Assembly: GCA_038087875.1 (NCBI GenBank)
Contig: CM075985.1
Span: 13,702,001 to 13,766,000, forward strand
Direction of reading: 5' to 3'
Source: Malacoraja senta
Taxonomy: Eukaryota
DNA: 64,000 bases
Within the stretch, counting starts at the first letter, position 1. Each line of letters starts with the position of its first letter. A program made the translations under genes and the position numbers. The notes beneath the pieces were generated by a model. It was not told where the DNA came from and ran no database searches. It saw only the letters and a list, made by a program, of their open reading frames with translations. Below are positions 1 to 56,799 of the stretch, piece after piece.

Positions 1-3000
1 CCTTTAAGGGGGGGGCGGGGTTAAAACGCGGTTTCTCCTTCCTTGTGCTGAATTATATTTTGTTGGAGTACCAGCCTCGGTGAAAGAATCGTTCCGGGTG
101 CCGTTTTGCGTAGTTTGTTTAAAAAATCTCCCAACAAGTTCAGCGTTGGAATCATTTTAAAATCATCTTCTGAAGCGTCAACGCCAACAACGGGGACGGA
201 TTTCACACAAGGGAAAGGTAAACGAATGTGCCTTATTTTAATGTATAAACGTTCTGCTTAAGAGGCCTTTAATTCACTTTTTTTCATGCGACACGGTGAT
301 TTTTCCCCCCGAATTAACGGCAGTATTTTTCATGCCAATACGGGGTTAAATTCACCGCAAATGAACGTTCCAAATAATCGCGTTCCAGAAATCCCCATTC
401 GCAAGATGATATAAATTCCCATTAATTTACAGGTATTAAACATTCAATTCCTTCCATTTGGCCTGTAAATTCATGAAAATTAGATTTAAAAATTATGTTA
501 TATTGTGAATTATTGTGTGAATGTTATTTGGACACTTAAGCTTTTTAAAAATGTTAAACTATTCTTAAATAAATGGATAGATGTTTAAATCTAGTAATTG
601 AATTTAGATGAAACTGATGATTTTCTTGTTGAGTATTTACTATTTGTTTTAGCATTTAACTTTATCATTTCTACCTTTTTTTCTAAAGCTGCAAATAATA
701 ACTTGTTTCTGTTAATGATGTTCAGTGTTTTTTTTTAAATTTACATTGTAAATAGATGTCTCCAAAGAAGAAATGCAAAATTGTCAATCCAAAAGCCCAG
801 GCAGGCATAGCTAGAGTTCAACTTGAAGAGAAGTTCTCTGTCATGCCTGAGTCTAAGAGGGATCTTAAAAATGGACACATCTTGTACTTGTATACCTCGT
901 TTGGAAAAAGTCTGCCTGAAACAGAGAAATCGCTGAGTTCACATTTCTCTTTGTCGGATGCAGAAGGCTATTCATTTGTTACTGTTAAGTTAAAAGTGAA
1001 GACTCTCGTTAACCGGACTTTGCTTAAGTTTAAAAAACTCACCAATCCCAAGGAACTTGGAGTATTTATGGAAATTTGTGATGAAACTTTTAAACTTCCG
1101 GAAGGCAGTCAACACATTTCTTTAGATGACATTCCACTGCCTGGTGCTCAAGATCCTGAATCCTTGACATCTGCCGAAAGCCAAGTGCCCATATTTCAAG
1201 ACACTGAGGACATGGGCGATGACAGTCATAGTCTGCATCCTCCACTGAATCTAGCAATGCCAACGACACCTGCTGCCTCACCTGAACCAATGCCATCGAC
1301 ATCTAGTGTTTCAAAAAGATGTACCAGAGAATTTCTAAGTCTTTCACCAGGGAAACAAAAATTGACGAAAAGACTAAAGTATATGTACGAATCCAGGGCT
1401 GCTCTTTCAACAAAGTATCACACAAAGATCAGTGAACTTAGGGCACGGTTGAAAACTCCCAAACGTATAGTTAATCAAGCCTTAAAGAGAAAGCAAAACC
1501 AAATAGATTTAAAGGACAGAAAGATTCAGGAACTCAAAACCAAATTACGTGATAATACTTCTGCACGAGTGCTTGCTAACACCAAGGCAGAGTTTTTGAA
1601 ACTTAAAAAAGCACACAGACAATTGCTGATGTTTCGTGGCAGTACGAAAAGGAGGAAAACTGTTTCAATTCACCAGTACAGAAAAGTTCATGAAAATTTA
1701 AAGGACAGGGAAGAGGATGTGAGACGCCTCGAATTTGACAATCTTGTCCTCAAAGAAACAATCGAAAATCTGCAGGCTGCCAGTATTGTCAAGGCAAAGG
1801 TGGGCCAGAAAACCTACTCCTCAACAATAAGGATGCATGTGTTCGACAGTATTGTAAACAAAACTCCCACAGCAAACATTCCAATCCTGATAAGCCAGTT
1901 CTACAAGCGGAGTGGACTTCATCTGGATTATGTTCCTCGACGCAGTGCAGTTGAAGTTATGGCCCGAGAATTGGGAGCTATTGCTGAGTTGCAAACAGCA
2001 GAGATGCTCCTTGCAACAAGCGGTTTGACTGTTGGGTTTGATGCAACCACCCAGGAAGAGACCCACATTAACAGTGTTCATTTCACCACCACAAACAACT
2101 GTCTCTCTGCAGCAGTTGATGAATTGGCTGGTGGGACTGCTGAGGACTATGCACAACATATTTGCGAAACAATTGACAATTTGTGTAAAACTTACATTTA
2201 TTTTAATGAGCAAACAAATTTTCAAGATACAAGACAAAAGATAATCGACAACATTTCAAACACAATGAGTGACAGGTGTGCAGCTAATCATGCTGCTATT
2301 AGAATTGTGAGTAGTGAGTGGGGTAAATATTTGAACGAGCTCTACTGCCACTTGCATCCTCTTGACTCCATTGCTACATCAGTTCGCTCAGCCCTAAAAA
2401 TGCAGAAACAATCCGGAGGACAATTCTTATTTGGGAAAGACTGTCTAGCAGTAAATGCCATACTGCAGATGAGCAAACTTAGATACAAAAACGGAAAAGG
2501 GGACCCAAAAGGATTTGTCGCATTTTTAGATGACAGGAACATCCCCCGAGGTGTCCTCCCACGGTACCGTGGCAACAGATTGCACATACTGTTTCATATT
2601 AGTGGCAAGCTGATAGAATATTATGATGACTTTGTTGCACTGCTGAATAGCGGAACATCCTGTGGGGGGTTGAAAAGCGCCATCCTCCATGACTTCACCC
2701 AGGCTGAAGCAAAAGTAGAACTTCAGATATTGGGCTTACTTGGCAAATATCTGACTGGGCCTTGGATGAAACGCTTCTACACTTCAAGCCAGAATCAGAT
2801 CAACCATGTTGATGGCATCAAAGTGGTTAAAGGGGTGATTGCTGCTCTAAAGGAAGCCACAGAAAATCCAGAGAACATCATATTGGCAAGGGAAGATTTC
2901 TTCGGTGAGGAGGTACATCTTGACGCCACATTGAAAAAACTTTGGGAGCTACCAATACATCCACAGTTCAGTTCAAAGATGAGGAGCTGTCTTCAAGCTG

Positions 3001-4203
3001 TCATCACTGTGTTGGAGAGGCAATATAGTAAATACTTTGAACTTGATGTTACTGAGAAACTGAAGGAGGAGACTGCATCAGCAAGATCACACAACATTGA
3101 TGCGGAGGAGATAATGGGGATGTTTAGCTCATCGAAACAGAAATCTCCCAATGCCACCATGTGTTATTTGTCATGTAGGATGCGGGCCTGCAAGAATAGA
3201 ACAGTCAATTACCTTGATAATCTCGAGGAGCATCGTAGGGAGGAGGTGCTCTGTAAGGCAATGAAATTGGGGAGAGTGCAGAGGAACAGACGGAAGAAAA
3301 AACAGAAGGAATTGAGAGCAGAAATCATCAAGCGACAGAAAGGCAAGGAGCATGCTCGGGACACGAAAGAGAGGAAAAAAATAGAAAAAAAATTGAAAGA
3401 GACTGATTTAAACAGCATTCGCAGAGATTATCCAAATTTGGACTACTCCAAATGTGATGATCTACAGGACATACTTAATGGGAAAGTAGTGGGCAGAAAG
3501 GCATGTCATGTGTGGTTTGAAGAGCAAAAACCTGTAGTTTACAATGCCAAAATTGAAAAGTTGAGGAAAAACAAGGTGTACAGAGTTGCTTATTGGTTGC
3601 AATCTGACGAGTATGATGATGCTACTGATTTTGATATGCCAATGTACCAGCTAGCAGCTGATCTTCTCCTTAAAGATTTGGTCTTTTGCTAGAAATTGTA
3701 AATTAATTACCTATCTGTTACGGACTTACAGCATATAATACAATAATATTAAAGTTCTGATCTTGAGAATATCACATTTTTGAATTTTCAAAGCAGTCTG
3801 GGTGTTTATTACTATTTCCGTCACATCGGTCAATTTTGTAATTAGCTACAATTAAGTAACTAACTAATTATATGCTGCAATTTCAGGTCATCCAAGTAAG
3901 ATTATTTTATATTTGTTTCAGAATGCTTCAATCTATAATAACTGAAAATTTCATTCAGTTCTCTTAATTTTTAAGAAAGTTATGGGCTTTTGACTGTCCT
4001 CGATCACAGCTTTTGAGACAAGTCAATGGAAAGGCAATAGGGAACAAGATGCTAATTTCCGAGTATGAAAATGGCCATAACTTTTTTAATACTGAAGATA
4101 TCAAAGTGAATTAGGTGTCAAATTAAACTTCTTGTAATGCTTTATCTGATGGGATAAATTACAGACTTGATTTTTAAAATCTCAAAATTTTGTAACATTG
4201 CTA
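1..4203 (+). mobile_element. Autonomous DNA transposon carrying the 978-aa ORF; left end lies outside the window
   Basis: AT-rich subterminal region 3700-4200 ends in ...TTTTGTAACATTGCTA (4203), which reads 5'-TAG on the minus strand as in hAT-type termini. The matching left TIR and TSD are not visible, so the right boundary is inferred. Confidence 0.55.
756..3692 (+). CDS. Intact 978-aa DDE transposase, divergent hAT-like (C/DxxH group), with C-terminal Spin/Ssty (Spindlin) Tudor-like domain
   Basis: Uninterrupted 2.9-kb ORF. Motif order GFD429ATTQ ... MSD506RCAAN ... C531HLH534 ... YRGNRLH ... N780IDAE784E matches the D-D-CxxH-(R)-E layout of hAT-group transposases. It has an N-terminal PKKKCK NLS-like motif and basic coiled-coil regions. 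Residues 911-978 resemble a Spindlin repeat. Confidence 0.8.
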   Translation: MSPKKKCKIVNPKAQAGIARVQLEEKFSVMPESKRDLKNGHILYLYTSFGKSLPETEKSLSSHFSLSDAEGYSFVTVKLKVKTLVNRTLLKFKKLTNPKELGVFMEICDETFKLPEGSQHISLDDIPLPGAQDPESLTSAESQVPIFQDTEDMGDDSHSLHPPLNLAMPTTPAASPEPMPSTSSVSKRCTREFLSLSPGKQKLTKRLKYMYESRAALSTKYHTKISELRARLKTPKRIVNQALKRKQNQIDLKDRKIQELKTKLRDNTSARVLANTKAEFLKLKKAHRQLLMFRGSTKRRKTVSIHQYRKVHENLKDREEDVRRLEFDNLVLKETIENLQAASIVKAKVGQKTYSSTIRMHVFDSIVNKTPTANIPILISQFYKRSGLHLDYVPRRSAVEVMARELGAIAELQTAEMLLATSGLTVGFDATTQEETHINSVHFTTTNNCLSAAVDELAGGTAEDYAQHICETIDNLCKTYIYFNEQTNFQDTRQKIIDNISNTMSDRCAANHAAIRIVSSEWGKYLNELYCHLHPLDSIATSVRSALKMQKQSGGQFLFGKDCLAVNAILQMSKLRYKNGKGDPKGFVAFLDDRNIPRGVLPRYRGNRLHILFHISGKLIEYYDDFVALLNSGTSCGGLKSAILHDFTQAEAKVELQILGLLGKYLTGPWMKRFYTSSQNQINHVDGIKVVKGVIAALKEATENPENIILAREDFFGEEVHLDATLKKLWELPIHPQFSSKMRSCLQAVITVLERQYSKYFELDVTEKLKEETASARSHNIDAEEIMGMFSSSKQKSPNATMCYLSCRMRACKNRTVNYLDNLEEHRREEVLCKAMKLGRVQRNRRKKKQKELRAEIIKRQKGKEHARDTKERKKIEKKLKETDLNSIRRDYPNLDYSKCDDLQDILNGKVVGRKACHVWFEEQKPVVYNAKIEKLRKNKVYRVAYWLQSDEYDDATDFDMPMYQLAADLLLKDLVFC

Positions 4204-4798
4204 ATTACTGTGCCATGATTAAGTTATGAAGCAATGTCCATTTTTTCTATTTCTCTGGCTTTTATCTTTTGGTGTGCACAAAACAGACGGATGAGATAAA
4301 GGTACTTAAAATGATAAAAGGTCTAGTAGGAGTAGGTAGAAAGCTCTTTCCGTTGGCAGAAGGGTCAAGAATCAGAGGACGTAAATTTTACCCACCACCT
4401 CGTCCATGCTGACCACGATACCAATCTAAAATAATCCCATTTGCATGGATTAGGACACATCCTTCCGCTCTTTTCCTATAAAAGTACCTGTCCAACTGCA
4501 CGCCAATTCTAAGAGGGCTGAGTTAAGTGGTGATCAAATATTTGTTTCAATGAAGTGGATTTTAAGGAGAATCTTCGATGCATAGTGTGATAAAGGAAGG
4601 AAATGGCCGGTACACATTACCCGCATATCCATGTGCCTATCTAAAAGTCTCTTAAACATCATTATTGTACCTGCTTCCACCATCACCCGCGGCAGCAGAT
4701 TCCATTCTTAGTCTTTTTCTTTTCTCTGTTTTATAGAATTCATGTGTAATTTATGTATAATTTAGGTTTTTTTTTATTGTCTGAGCTGACATGCCTGT

Positions 4799-5645
4799 GA
4801 TACGATACGATAGAACTTTATTTATCCCAGGAGTAAAATTGATCTGCCAACAGTCATAAAACACAAAAATACATGAAACATGAAATTAAAGTGACAAGTG
4901 CAAAGGATTGGGGATGTGCAAAGATTGGGGGGTTGGGGGAGGGAGGAGGTGGAGTCAGTCTACCCCACGACAGAAGGGGAGGAGTTGTACAATTTGATAG
5001 CCACAGGGAAGAAGGATCTCCTGTGGCGTTCTGTATTGCATCTTGGTGGAACCAGTCTGTTGCTGAAGGTACTCCTCAGGTTGACCAGTGTGTCATGGAG
5101 GGAGTGAGCTGTATTGTCCAAGATGCTCCACAGTTCGAGGAGCATCTTCTCATCCAAGACCACCTCCCATGAATCCTACACCGCTCCCAGGACGGTGCCA
5201 ACCTTCCTGATGATTTTGTTAATCCTATTGGCATCCGCGGCCTTCGCCCTGCTGCCCCAGCACACGACAGCGAAGAAGATATCACTGGCTACCACTGATT
5301 GGTAGAACATCTGCAGCATCTTACTGCAGATGTTGAAGGAGCGGAGCCTTCTCAAAAAGGACAGCCGGCTCGGTCCCTTCTTGTACAGAGCATGGATCTT
5401 CCTGGACCGATCCAGTTTACTGTCCAGGTACACTCCAAGGTATTTGTACTCCCTGGTAAACTGCACATTCACACCATTGATGGAGACAGGGGACAGGGGT
5501 GTTCCTCTCCTCCTAAGTTCACCACTAATTCCTTAGTCTTGTCAGTGTTGAGCTGCAGGTGAGTCAGTCCACACCATTCAACAAAGCCATTGACTACACC
5601 TCTGTATTCAGCTTCACTCCCCCCACTGATGCAGCCCACGATTGC
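4799..5645 (-). mobile_element. Rex1/Babar-type LINE, 5'-truncated and decayed
   Basis: Minus-strand fragments AIVGCI..EYRGVVNGFVEWC..LQLNTDKTKELVV, YKYLGVYLDSKL, RLSFLRRLRSFNIC and RRSFFPVAIKLYN. 3' tail with AATAAA and short tandem repeats near 4800-4825. Confidence 0.8.
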
Positions 5646-6215
5646 AGGTGCTACTGCAAGCATGATACCTGTACCTCAATATACTTGTGAATATGCAAAT
5701 AAACTCCACATGACTTGGATCAGTCTACCATGCAGAACCTTAAAGTCCATTTGGAAAACAGCTACCACCCTGCCTTTATTAATCTCCATGGTTACCTCCA
5801 CAAAAAACTCTGGTTTGTGAGACATGATCTCCCCTGCACAAAACTATGCTGATCCCACCTAATCAGTCCTTGCCTTTCCAAATGAACATAACTCTTATCC
5901 CTCAGAATCTTCTCTAATAATTGCCACAATACTTATGTAAGGCTTACTGGTCACTGCTCTTTTTCGACAAGGGAACAACATTAGCTATTCTCTAGTCTTC
6001 TGGTTCCTTATTTGTGGCTAAAGCGAAGCAAAAATCCCAGTCTAATCGGAATCCATTTATACAAACAATAAAAAGAAACAATTTTACCATTTTTGCAGCA
6101 TTTGGTAACTTGCAGGACAGCCAAAGTAAGTTGACTGTGTAAACGCCACTCAATGTTCAGAGTTGCTCTCACTTCTGTGGTCCCCAAACAATTGGGTAAG
6201 TCAATCAGAGCAGAA

Positions 6216-6300
6216 GGTACACAAAAATGCTGGAGAAACTCAGCGGGTGCAGCAGCATCTATGGAGCGAAGGAAATAGGCAACGTTTCGGGCCGAAACCC
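6216..6300 (-). repeat. Short solo Penelope pLTR remnant; other copies at about 10209-10297, 11527-11614, 20680-20779, 23323-23520, 50891-50982 and 57397-57492; fold-back variants at 21731-21920, 26829-27019 and 57268-57492
   Basis: Nearly identical to the terminus of the element at 55607-55700 (GGTACACAAAAATGCTGGAGAAACTCAGCGGG...CGTTTCGGGCCGAAACCC). Some copies have TSDs, e.g. CAGTGGAGGCC flanking the copy at 50891. Confidence 0.85.
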
Positions 6301-6703
6301 CAGACCCTGACTCATTTTTATTCATAGCTTACAATGGAAAGATGGCCACAGGTGAAAAGATATCAAGTTATTTATAAGCATGCCAATGGATGGTGTATTG
6401 TCCATTTGCTTGGTCAAGAATTTTCAGAGATGGTACATTTGAAACTTTCTGTCAGCTTTCCTAATTACTTGCTCGACCTACATATGATCAAAACATGTAC
6501 TATGCACCTCAGAGTTCTTCAATCTCTCGTTCAAAGAATTTCAAATGTTCCTGTTTGTGAAACAGAGCCTGATCACTTGATTCAGTAATGTGATTATAGG
6601 ATCTATTCCCTTCAGGTATGACAAATTGACAGTGGCACTAATAAACTTTTCTGTTATTCTTCTATGGCAAACCTTCCATTTTGAGCTAACAAGAATGAAG
6701 TTA

Positions 6704-7473
6704 AGGGGCTGTCCCACTTCGGCGACCTAATCTGCGAGTTTAGACGAGTTTGCCCTCGACTCAAACTCGCAGCATGGTCGATACGAGGTCCTAGGAGGGC
6801 CTATGAGGTCACTGGAACTCTCCTTCATGCTCGAAGGAAGTTCCCGAATACTCGTGGCCTCAAGTACGTTGCGGAAAATTTTTCAGCATGTTGAAAATTT
6901 TTCCGCGAGTAAAATTTGGTCGGCATGGTTCTTTTTGACTCGTAGTGCAGTGGAGTGGGGTCGCTATTTAGTTACAGGCAGTCGAGGGCAGCCGTATGCA
7001 ATCTCCTTCGATGACCGGGCATTTTGATTGGCTCATTGGAGTTTTCAGCACCAGGGAAAACCGACCGGTAAGTAAAATGCCCGCTAAACTTTATTATACC
7101 TTAAAAGTGTCTCCACGCCTTCTCCCCCCATCTCTCCCCCTCTTCCTCCCCTCCCCCCCCCACCGCGCTCTCTAAAGGACTTACCATACACTGTGGCAGC
7201 CGTTTACCTTCCTGTTCATCGCGGGTGTGAATTTCAGACAGCGCTCCCCCGCTTTCCCTGGCCCCCGCCTTTGCGATGTGTGTGTGTGTGAGTGTGTGTG
7301 TGTGTGTGTGTGCGTGTGCGTGCGTGCATGTGGTCGGCCGATCGATCCAGCTCGCGGTTTCAACGTGGACGGTCGATCCAGCTCGAGGTTTTCCAGGCGA
7401 GTGCCCTCAAGCTTGAAGGTCGAAGACACTCTTCTTAACTCGCGGATCAGGTCGCCGCAGTGGGACAGCCCCT
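6704..7473. mobile_element. PIF/Harbinger-type MITE
   Basis: TIRs AGGGGCTGTCCCACT / AGTGGGACAGCCCCT with further subterminal complementarity (CGGCGACCT / AGGTCGCCG). Left flank is TTA. Internal (TG)n; no transposase. Confidence 0.8.
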
Positions 7474-9134
7474 TTCCAGAGTTGTAGAGTTATATAGTGT
7501 TATAACAGGTCCTTCAGCCCATCTCATCCATGCCAACCAAGATGCCTGTGAAATAGTCCTATTTTCCTATATTTGGCCCATAATCCTTCTGATCCATGTA
7601 CCTGTCCAGATATTTCGTAGATGTCATTGGAGCTATCTCTATTACTGCCTCTGGCAGCTTCATCCATACAGGTACTACCCTCTATGGAAAAACGCACCCG
7701 AGGTCTCCTTTAAATCGCTCTCTTCTCACCTTAAGCCTATGCTCCCTAGTTTTAGACACCTCTATCTTGGGAGGAAGACTGTGACTGTCTACCCTATTTA
7801 TGCTCCTCATGATTTTATAATCATCTTTAAGGGCATATTGATTGAACAACCTCATTGACCATGGGAATCTTGTTTCCTTCATTCATTTTCTGCCAGTTTT
7901 CAAACTGTGCACTCTATCTGTTCGGTCTCCCCAGTTACATTTCAAGTAGAAATTTATTTTCCCAAATATGCTTAAAAATAATATTTAAATAAAAAAATCT
8001 GGAAAATGTTTTCCCATTTCTTAACGATCATAGACATTGGACCATTTTACCAATGGCAAACTTTTTAATATGCTGCTTTATTGATAAAAGTAATTATGGC
8101 TCCCTGATAAATCTGTCAATTATAATGGAAATAAAATCACCACATTAGCAATTAACATGTTAGAACAAGAAAACCTGAAGCACTCAATGGGGAAAATGTA
8201 ATAAGTACAGCATTACTTTGCTTGCCAATTGGACTCTATTGCATCATTTATGACAGAGGTCTTATACTGGTACTGCTTCCAGGCTTCCTCCTTGCTGTAA
8301 ATTTGAAATATTAGCTTTGCAGATCTCTTCTGGAATACAACTACATTCCATGAGTGTGTTGCATGTCCGAGATTTTAGTGCAACAAAAGTAATCTTTTAT
8401 AGACACAAAATGCTGGCGTAACTCAGTGGGACAGGCAGCATCTCTGGAGAGAAGGAATGGGTGACGTTTCGGGTCTGACCTATCTTCAGGCTCAAGTAAT
8501 AATTTTGTACATATTGAAGGAGACCAATGTGGCAGAAAGCAATGTAATGTTTCTCAAAATAATTTCTGACCAGCAGCCGCACTAAGTTAAGGGTGAAGTT
8601 ATAACATTTATCCGACTAACATGAAATTTATTTTCCCTCCATTTGGAACAGGAACTGCATAACAACAACTAATCTTCTGAGATATGAGCATTCCAATATT
8701 TCATATTAAGAGCCATAGATTTTTGCTGGTATGCCATTTCACAGTACAGAACAATATAGTTAAATGCAGGAATAGACATTCATCTCAATGTCAGTTCTGA
8801 CAAGAAGAAATCATGACTGAAGTATTTCATACAGTGATAGAAGCAATATCCTCTCGTGGATGGTATTAAAAAAAGTCAGAAGCAGAGTAAAAACTGGTCT
8901 TTCTGCAAATCTGGAAACTGCCAGTAATTAACTACAATGGAAATGTCAATTTAATAGAGCCCAATTTAAAACATATCTCAAACAGACTGACTCAGACTAC
9001 AGATCAACTACAACATATTGCAAAGGAAAGAAGTGCTGTGTGGTTGGTGATTAAATGTGCAACCACAGTGAAGTATCTGAACAGATGATGTAGCTCATGC
9101 AAATATATGTCTTTATGTTGATATGCCAAATTTC

Positions 9135-55572: not shown

Positions 55573-56799
55573 TTAAAGAAGGAACTGCAGATGCTGGAAA
55601 ATCGAAGGTACACAAAAATGCTGGAGAAACTCAGCGGGTGCAGCAGCATCTATGGAGCGAAGGAAATAGGTAACGTTTCGGGCCGAAACCCTTCTTCAGA
55701 CTGATAGGGGGTGGGGAGAAGAAAGGAAAAAAGGAAAAGGAGGAGGAGGAGCCCGAGGGTTGGGGGAGGGGAGGAGACAACCAGATGGCTGATGAAGGGG
55801 AGGGGACAGCCAGGGCTAGCAGAATTGGGAGAATTCAACGTTCAGGCCACCAGGGTGTAGACTGCCCAAGCGGAATATGAGGTGCATTTCCTCCAATTTA
55901 CGGTGTTGCTCGCTGTGGCCATGGAGGAGACCCAGGACAGAGAGGTCAGATACGGAATGGGAGGGGGAGTTGAAGTGCTGAGCCACCGGGAGTTCAGGTT
56001 GGTTATTGCGGACCGACCAACAAGTGATCCTCCGTCAGTTTCGCCACCTCCAACGTGACCCCACCACTCGCCACATCTTCCCATCTCCCCCTATGTCTGC
56101 CTTCCGCAAAGACCGCTCCCTCCGTAACTCCCTTGTCAATTCTTCCCTTCCCTCCCATACCACCCCCTCCCCTGGTACTTTCCCTTGCAACCGCAAGAGA
56201 TGCAACACTTGTCCCTTCACTTCCCCCCTCCACTCCATTCCAGGACCCAAGCAGTCGTTCCAGGTGCGACAGAGGTTCACCTGCATCTCCTCCAACCTCA
56301 TCTATTGCATTCGCTGCTCTAGATGCCAGCTGATCTACATCGGTGAGACCAAGCGGAGGCTTGGCGATCGTTTCACCGAACACCTCCGGTCGGTCCGCAA
56401 TAACCAACCTGAACTCCCGGTGGCTCAGCACTTCAACTCCCCCTCCCATTCCGTATCTGACCTCTCTGTCCTGGGTCTCCTCCATGGCCACAGCGAGCAA
56501 CACCGTAAATTGGAGGAAATGCACCTCATATTCCGCTTGGGCAGTCTACACCCTGGTGGCCTGAACGTTGAATTCTCCCAATTCTGCTAGCCCTGGCTGT
56601 CCCCTCCCCTTCATCAGCCATCTGGTTGTCTCCTCCCCTCCCCCAACCCTCGGGCTCCTCCTCCTCCTTTTCCTTTTTTCCTTTCTTCTCCCCACCCCCT
56701 ATCAGTCTGAAGAAGGGTTTCGGCCCGAAACGTTACCTATTTCCTTCGCTCCATAGATGCTGCTGCACCCGCTGAGTTTCTCCAGCATTTTTGTGTACC
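55573..56799 (+). mobile_element. Young 5'-truncated Penelope-like element (GIY-YIG endonuclease portion) with inverted pLTR and 15-bp TSD
   Basis: ORF 56006-56590: CNRKRCNTC..NLIYCIRCSRCQLIYIGETKRRLGDRFTEH..VAQHF..GLN. Arms 55607-56018 and 56388-56799 are 412-bp inverted repeats. TSD ATATAATCTTTGGTT at 55558-55572 and 56800-56814. Confidence 0.92.
56707..56735 (+). ncRNA. Minimal hammerhead-ribozyme-like core in the Penelope pLTR
   Basis: CUGAAGA-A-GGGU(UUCG)GCCC-GAAA-CGUU. Catalytic boxes, stem II and a palindromic minimal stem III are present; stem I is weak. Confidence 0.5.

Follow-up and report, generated by a model that had tools for sequence, protein, structure and literature searches.

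Mobile elements whose enzymes carry chromatin reader domains are the clearest natural cases of chromatin-guided integration, and so far these readers have mostly been chromodomains and PHD fingers. Capture of reader domains by transposable elements (TEs) has been documented in a survey based on Pfam domains, mainly for Chromo and PHD domains and including hAT-Chromo fusions in a sponge (10.1101/2021.11.30.470311). A Gypsy element of Ectocarpus, described in 2025, was to its authors' knowledge the first TE with a Tudor domain (PMC12477816). Here we analyzed a 64-kb stretch of DNA from Malacoraja senta (the window), in which an open reading frame (ORF) at 756-3692 on the forward strand encodes a protein with the predicted fold and motifs of a hAT-like transposase, ending in a predicted Tudor domain. 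Full-text literature searches for Tudor or Spindlin-type domains on transposons, hAT elements included, turned up no account of this fusion, and the only TE-borne Tudor domain found in them was that of the Ectocarpus Gypsy element. Reader domains on mobile-element enzymes are known; what is new is that a hAT-like cut-and-paste transposase bears a Tudor domain similar to Spindlin repeat 2 and the RDM15 Tudor.

In our reading, the closest solved relatives of this domain are the second repeat of Spindlin and the Tudor domain of RDM15. The SPIN1 repeat consists of four core strands plus an extra strand, and its cage for trimethylated lysine 4 of histone H3 (H3K4me3) is formed by F141, W151, Y170 and Y177 (PMC3967050). 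Residues E142 and D189 hold the H3 N-terminus (A1) and D184 holds R2, such that a D184A substitution costs approximately 90-fold in affinity; the H3-binding surface is negatively charged, and Spindlin repeat 1 reads methyl-arginine (PMC3967050). RDM15, a reader of monomethylated H3K4, has a three-residue cage (W616, Y623 and Y641) and uses D643 and D645 to select monomethyl-lysine (PMC8184781). Both of the nearest barrels read methylated H3K4. We tentatively favor, with something short of even confidence, the view that the Malacoraja senta protein is a transposase with its own histone-tail reader that tethers integration to marked chromatin.

The C-terminal domain and its nearest structural relatives

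The last 96 amino acids (aa) of the protein were used for an exhaustive search of 1.84 billion cluster representatives, which retrieved 220 clusters at E ≤0.001. An alignment of 92 of these clusters (A3) is the basis of the domain profile, the AlphaFold2 model and the residue counts reported here. The model has a mean pLDDT of 92.6; a pair of short helices leads into four strands, after which come another helix and a short terminal strand. It places the domain at aa 905-978 (74 aa; 3468-3689, forward strand), with strands at 915-922, 925-936, 941-948 and 957-962, a helix at 963-971 and an extra strand at 975-977. A sequence-only reading of the stretch had proposed a Spindlin-like Tudor domain in 3486-3692, which corresponds to the 68 aa from V911 to the stop codon; translation of the ORF returned the same 68 residues, with W920, Y929 and Y946 where they had been placed. 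Together, the model and the alignment support a discrete, conserved single Tudor domain in the last 74 aa, composed of a barrel, a helix and an extra strand.

Comparison of the domain model to the Protein Data Bank (PDB) with Foldseek placed Spindlin-1, -2B, -3 and -4 on top (E from 8.5e-3, probability 1.0). Re-alignment with VIA-align located the match at SPIN1 residues 123-193, which comprise Spin/Ssty repeat 2 and the helix and strand that come after it (Z 8.0-8.7, rmsd 1.8-3.0 A, 63-68 residues); the Spindlin-like Tudor domain anticipated from sequence is thereby upheld at the level of the predicted structure. Among 550,129 Swiss-Prot models, 16 of the 17 top matches were Spin/Ssty proteins, including mouse Ssty1, and all aligned at repeat 2. 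Furthermore, when the A3 profile was run against 177,635 PDB sequences, the top 16 matches were 16 Spindlin chains (E 0.0056-0.12). Since Spindlins head the profile, Foldseek and Swiss-Prot results, we conclude that the resemblance to Spindlin is more than chance. RDM15 (Z 7.2, rmsd 1.8 A) and the BAHCC1 tandem Tudor domain ranked after the Spindlins in the structure search, and SMN, SETDB1, PHF20 and TDRD3 also matched the fold. The protein language-model neighbors of aa 900-978 were PTM/DIR17-Tudor and Spin/Ssty clusters, each at 0.82-0.83.

The domain shares with Spindlin repeat 2 a four-strand Tudor barrel that is followed by a helix and an extra strand. In contrast, identity is 14-18%, and a 9-residue insertion relative to SPIN1 (aa 954-962) precedes the last core strand position and forms the fourth strand here. 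Spindlin is a free-standing protein with three interlocked repeats in one globular unit, whereas the present domain is a single copy fused to a transposase. The RDM15/PDS5C-type Tudor of Arabidopsis is likewise a single Tudor domain at a C-terminus, with a W/Y/Y cage.

Membership in the Spin/Ssty family is not supported. The Spin-Ssty model (PF02513), proposed earlier as a check on the domain, matched neither the protein nor its last 96 aa at E values up to 10, there is one repeat and not three, and the nearest Pfam model is PTM_DIR17_Tudor. Of the proposed Spindlin-like Tudor, therefore, the single Tudor fold nearest Spindlin repeat 2 stands and the family membership does not. When Pfam models were compared to the 92 relatives, PTM_DIR17_Tudor matched 12 (best E 4e-6), Agenet 6, BAHCC1 Tudor 3 and Spin-Ssty one (E 0.014). 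The only relative whose PTM_DIR17_Tudor score was seen individually, designated P0053, reached 15.9 bits, and the gathering cut-off is 27.2. Single-sequence searches of Pfam and of PDB sequences yielded no meaningful match, either for the full protein or for the C-terminal 96 aa. A profile of 9 sequences had no Spindlin match, and a profile search of a 5.8-billion-protein set for short proteins annotated as Spin-Ssty returned only members of the present family. Our reading is that the domain represents a separate Tudor subfamily and does not belong to Spin/Ssty.

The candidate ligand pocket

Profile alignments pair the H-x-W of the domain (H918, W920) with H-G-W62 in Spindlin repeat 1 and with H-M-F141 in repeat 2. 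They also pair Y929 with W72 and W151, Y946 with Y91 and Y170, and Y953 with Y98. W920 (codon 3513-3515), Y929 (3540-3542) and Y946 (3591-3593), all on the forward strand, thus align with cage positions 1, 2 and 3, as had been judged by eye from the sequence. These positions are aromatic in 96%, 99% and 99% of the 92 relatives, respectively; the corresponding values are 95% for position 947, 77% for 953 and 88% for 959. The domain therefore has in common with Spindlin repeat 2 an H-x-aromatic at the first cage position, aromatic residues at the second and third, and another tyrosine seven residues after the third.

Two acidic residues in the tail, D969 and D974 (3660-3677, forward strand), are also highly conserved: D969 is invariant in 92/92 relatives and position 974 is D or E in 90/92. 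Both structural alignments end with residue 96 of the model opposite SPIN1 residue 193. A gapless tail anchored at this end would pair D969 with D184 and D974 with D189 and would reproduce the MYQL..D...DL match, making the Y-Q-L-x-x-D-x-x-x-(G)-D-L of the domain colinear with SPIN1 179-190. For the SPIN1 tail sequence used in this pairing, the only check was agreement with the residue numbering of the SPIN1 paper. The retained tail motif described in the sequence-only reading agrees with these end-anchored alignments. A profile restricted to the tail (strand 3 to the end) retrieves no Spindlin, and thus the MYQL..D...DL resemblance is not significant alone.

From the fold and conservation of the domain, together with the fold of the enzyme, we infer how the protein might bind chromatin and influence integration. 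The aromatic pocket (W920, Y929, Y946 and either Y953 or F959) would take up a methylated lysine of a histone tail or, less likely, a methylated arginine. The acidic C-terminal half of the domain, with D969 and D974, would grip the basic tail, and a basic helix that precedes the domain would rest on nearby DNA. In this way the transposase complex would be tethered to marked nucleosomes and its integration sites would be biased, a role that chromodomains play for the integrases of chromoviruses. The methylation state read by the domain is not predictable, because the Asp pair that RDM15 uses for monomethyl-lysine (Y641-x-D643-x-D645) is absent here in that spacing. As in chromovirus integrases and in the DNA transposons that carry Chromo or PHD domains, a royal-family mark reader would lie C-terminal to a DDE enzyme with an expected role in tethering. 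The present case differs from the chromovirus integrases in that the reader is a Tudor domain and the enzyme a cut-and-paste transposase.

Several points weigh against a histone-tail reader of Spindlin type. Spindlin's structural lead over generic Tudor domains is small, and in a Foldseek-independent search Spindlin-4 and the RDM15 Tudor have equal scores (Z 7.2). Z scores of 7-8 lie in the middling range according to the tool and can reflect a common arrangement. All sequence E values to Spindlin are borderline, and the single protein lacks any Pfam Tudor match. The fourth wall of the cage is also ambiguous: the +7 spacing, which resembles Y170-Y177 of SPIN1, points to Y953 (codon 3612-3614, forward strand), whereas the tail alignment sets P962 opposite Y177. 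Either Y953 or F959 may be the fourth wall. This position had previously been described as not clearly aromatic, which holds if P962 is the equivalent but not if Y953 is. Finally, DNA, RNA and proteins are also among the ligands of Tudor and SH3-like barrels. Because RDM15 ties with Spindlin-4, the case for an evolutionary link between Spindlins and transposons is weak.

An alternative is that the domain is a nucleic-acid-binding or assembly module, similar to the SH3-like C-terminal domain of retroviral integrases, that acts with the basic helix to hold target or transposon DNA and reads no mark. The barrel comes right after the DDE core, in the place that the C-terminal domains of integrases have, the helix before it has a net charge of about +15, and structural neighbors at Z 5-7 include TnsB, the TraI translocation domain, CarD, the UvrD/PcrA Tudor and Sm folds. 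On the other hand, the best structural matches are readers of histone methyl-lysine, and the conserved residues form an aromatic pocket and are acidic, not basic. The second half of the domain, which lies around the pocket, has 8 acidic residues and 1 basic residue, and in this it resembles the negatively charged H3-binding surface of SPIN1. We consider a mark-independent module possible but unlikely.

The ligand could alternatively be a methylated arginine on a non-histone partner. Tudor domains of SMN and TDRD proteins bind symmetric dimethyl-arginine of PIWI or Sm proteins, and through a domain of this kind the transposase would be connected with the silencing machinery or with RNA granules of the germline. 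One relative matches the Pfam SMN_Tudor model (E 0.0056), SMN chains are found at Z 5.1-5.3 with 24-25% identity, and methyl-arginine is the ligand of Spindlin repeat 1 (PMC3967050). These SMN-type matches fall well below those to Spindlin repeat 2 and RDM15, however, and under the end-anchored alignment the invariant D969 and D974 would pair with the SPIN1 residues that anchor A1 and R2 of H3. We regard this alternative as improbable, and a histone tail remains the ligand that we tentatively prefer.

The hAT-like transposase and its relatives

The ORF is stop-free and complete, encoding 978 aa and a stop codon. Its start codon is credible because ten homologues with 40-66% identity open with the same M-x-PKKK motif. 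A model of the whole protein, built from an alignment of 28 sequences, has a mean pLDDT of 78.4, with most of the core above 85. From N- to C-terminus it consists of a folded helical domain at aa 18-108 (807-1079; pLDDT ~90), a disordered stretch, long coiled-coil-like helices at aa 198-342 (1347-1781; poorly conserved, with 31% mean identity), a catalytic region at aa 352-824 (1809-3227), a basic helix and the Tudor domain, all encoded on the forward strand. No family was recognized for the N-terminal helical domain in Pfam, PDB sequences or the ESM Atlas; presumably it binds the DNA ends of the transposon. The basic helix is a single predicted helix of 58 residues (aa 825-882; 3228-3401, forward strand) with 25 K/R and 10 D/E, and it joins the core to the Tudor module. 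The connector had been called a basic coiled coil; its basic character and helical prediction are borne out, and it may form a coiled coil.

The Pfam search of the full 978-aa protein gave zero matches, and a whole-protein profile run against PDB sequences yielded coiled-coil noise only. In contrast, Foldseek comparison of the whole-protein model to the PDB returned the hAT transposase Hermes first (E 4.3e-6, ~540 columns) and the P element transposase next (E 1.4e-4). Additionally, the ESM Atlas structural neighbors of the nearest cluster bear hAT-family Pfam domains. The modeled catalytic part opens with three strands and then alternates helix, strand, helix, strand (aa 424-530, within RNase H-like strands and helices at 421-535). 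The all-helical insertion spans 536-775, and the final helix starts at 781. D429 is at the end of the first strand and D506 comes after the fourth; the CxxH motif, C531-x-x-H534, is placed after the fifth strand, and the helix past the insertion contains E784. All of these residues are kept in all or nearly all aligned relatives, and their position in the topology marks D429, D506 and E784 as the candidate catalytic triad.

The arrangement is comparable to that of Hermes and other hAT transposases, in which a large, all-helical insertion domain interrupts an RNase H-like DDE core, a CxxH motif follows the second Asp, and the catalytic Glu is part of an A-E-E-x-x-x-x-F-S sequence close to where the core ends. 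The differences are an extra N-terminal helical domain, the long coiled-coil-like helices, and the tail of basic helix and Tudor domain. Furthermore, neither the hAT C-terminal dimerization domain (PF05699) nor a BED finger was detected in the Malacoraja senta protein by Pfam. Because a Hermes-type fold is combined with conserved D/D/E and CxxH residues, the predicted fold and motifs support a hAT-like DDE transposase, as the sequence-only reading had supposed. The best explanation of the ORF is an autonomous cut-and-paste transposase from a hAT-like lineage that goes unrecognized by current Pfam models.

Compared to 26 relatives, the Tudor part has a mean identity of 48%, close to that of the catalytic parts (51-59%) and far above that of the linkers (19-27%). 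Relatives of the domain of at least 250 aa are all collinear pieces of the same transposase, with two exceptions, P0053 and P0160. The latter gave four partial matches and was rejected as a junk tandem-repeat ORF. The relatives with names are annotated as "uncharacterized" and come from a chiton, a limpet, a crinoid and a sea urchin. Assemblies of molluscs and echinoderms each contain several copies of the family; language-model and fold neighbors also point to molluscs and sponges. The closest relative (P0001) is present as three copies of at least 90% identity on different contigs of one assembly, with differing neighbors and small flanking ORFs in common. No second copy of the transposase was found in the 64-kb window.

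These data also bear on whether the locus is a domesticated, transposase-derived host gene whose Tudor domain serves a host chromatin function. The ORF is fully intact amid decayed repeats, and a 5' untranslated region (UTR) intron is possible by eye, with AG/GTAAAC near 217 (210-225) and a pyrimidine-rich tract ending in ...aaatag just before the ATG at 756 (735-758). Elements of the hAT type have short terminal inverted repeats and an 8-bp target-site duplication. A search of 1-8000 revealed neither convincing terminal inverted repeats nor subterminal motifs near the ORF; the 5' end of the element may lie before base 1. Opposed to domestication are the conserved D/D/E and CxxH residues and the nearest relative, of which three or more copies (≥90% identity) are present in differing surroundings. 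The patchy spread, with named relatives in molluscs and echinoderms versus a window whose repeats look like those of a cartilaginous fish, likewise fits a mobile element. We consider domestication quite unlikely, and we continue to read the locus as a transposase gene.

The other exception among the relatives, P0053, is a 376-aa ORF (L001:238-1368) whose first ~230 aa look Mutator/SWIM-like by eye, unconfirmed by Pfam. It continues in frame into a basic helix and a Tudor domain of the same subfamily, and fragments of the hAT-like core lie downstream on the same strand (L001:1713-2356). A Mutator/SWIM-Tudor fusion was considered and rejected, as Pfam gives no support for Mutator and the contig holds rearranged pieces of a hAT-like core. 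Instead of a genuine exchange of modules, the locus may represent a copy that is rearranged or nested, and it was not used as evidence.

Tudor domains of the same shape are also found at the C-termini of proteins in AlphaFold DB clusters that are automatically named THAP9-like HTH (leech), Mutator-like transposase and YqaJ recombinase (mussels), which hints that the Tudor module is shared among several mobile-element proteins. Separately, a motif that contains TGCAATAT is repeated, in direct and inverted orientation and at high density, downstream of the ORF of another relative, P0005 (L002:5950-6520). This cluster could represent the subterminal transposase-binding repeats of that family member.

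Surroundings of the ORF and significance

Other repeats are present in the window. Approximately 1.5 kb past the transposase stop codon, ORFs on the reverse strand at 5176-5663 resemble a LINE-type reverse transcriptase by eye. SINE-like repeats of families D1, D2, D4 and D7 are abundant at many places between 6207 and 62538 and have a common core of ...GCTGGAGTAACTCAG...GGCAGCATCTCTGGAGAG..., as is typical of cartilaginous fish genomes. A perfect inverted repeat at 55607-56799 is made of such repeats, with 412-nt arms (100% complementary) that lie 369 nt apart. A recent inverted duplication could account for it, as could an error in the assembly.

A broader proposal may be considered for the family as a whole. 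Under this proposal, a widespread metazoan hAT-like family would aim its integration at promoter-proximal chromatin by means of an H3K4-methyl-type Tudor domain, the module of basic helix and Tudor would have passed between P-like, Mutator-like and YqaJ-bearing superfamilies, and the domain might share ancestry with the vertebrate Spindlin repeat. We hold this proposal to be doubtful.

Since neither the enzyme nor the Tudor domain has a Pfam match, both are invisible to surveys based on Pfam domains, which would have missed this family. If the domain binds a defined mark, the protein would provide a compact natural model for mark-directed cut-and-paste insertion and a candidate targeting module for transposon tools. 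It would also offer a new single-domain comparison for Spindlin repeat 2.

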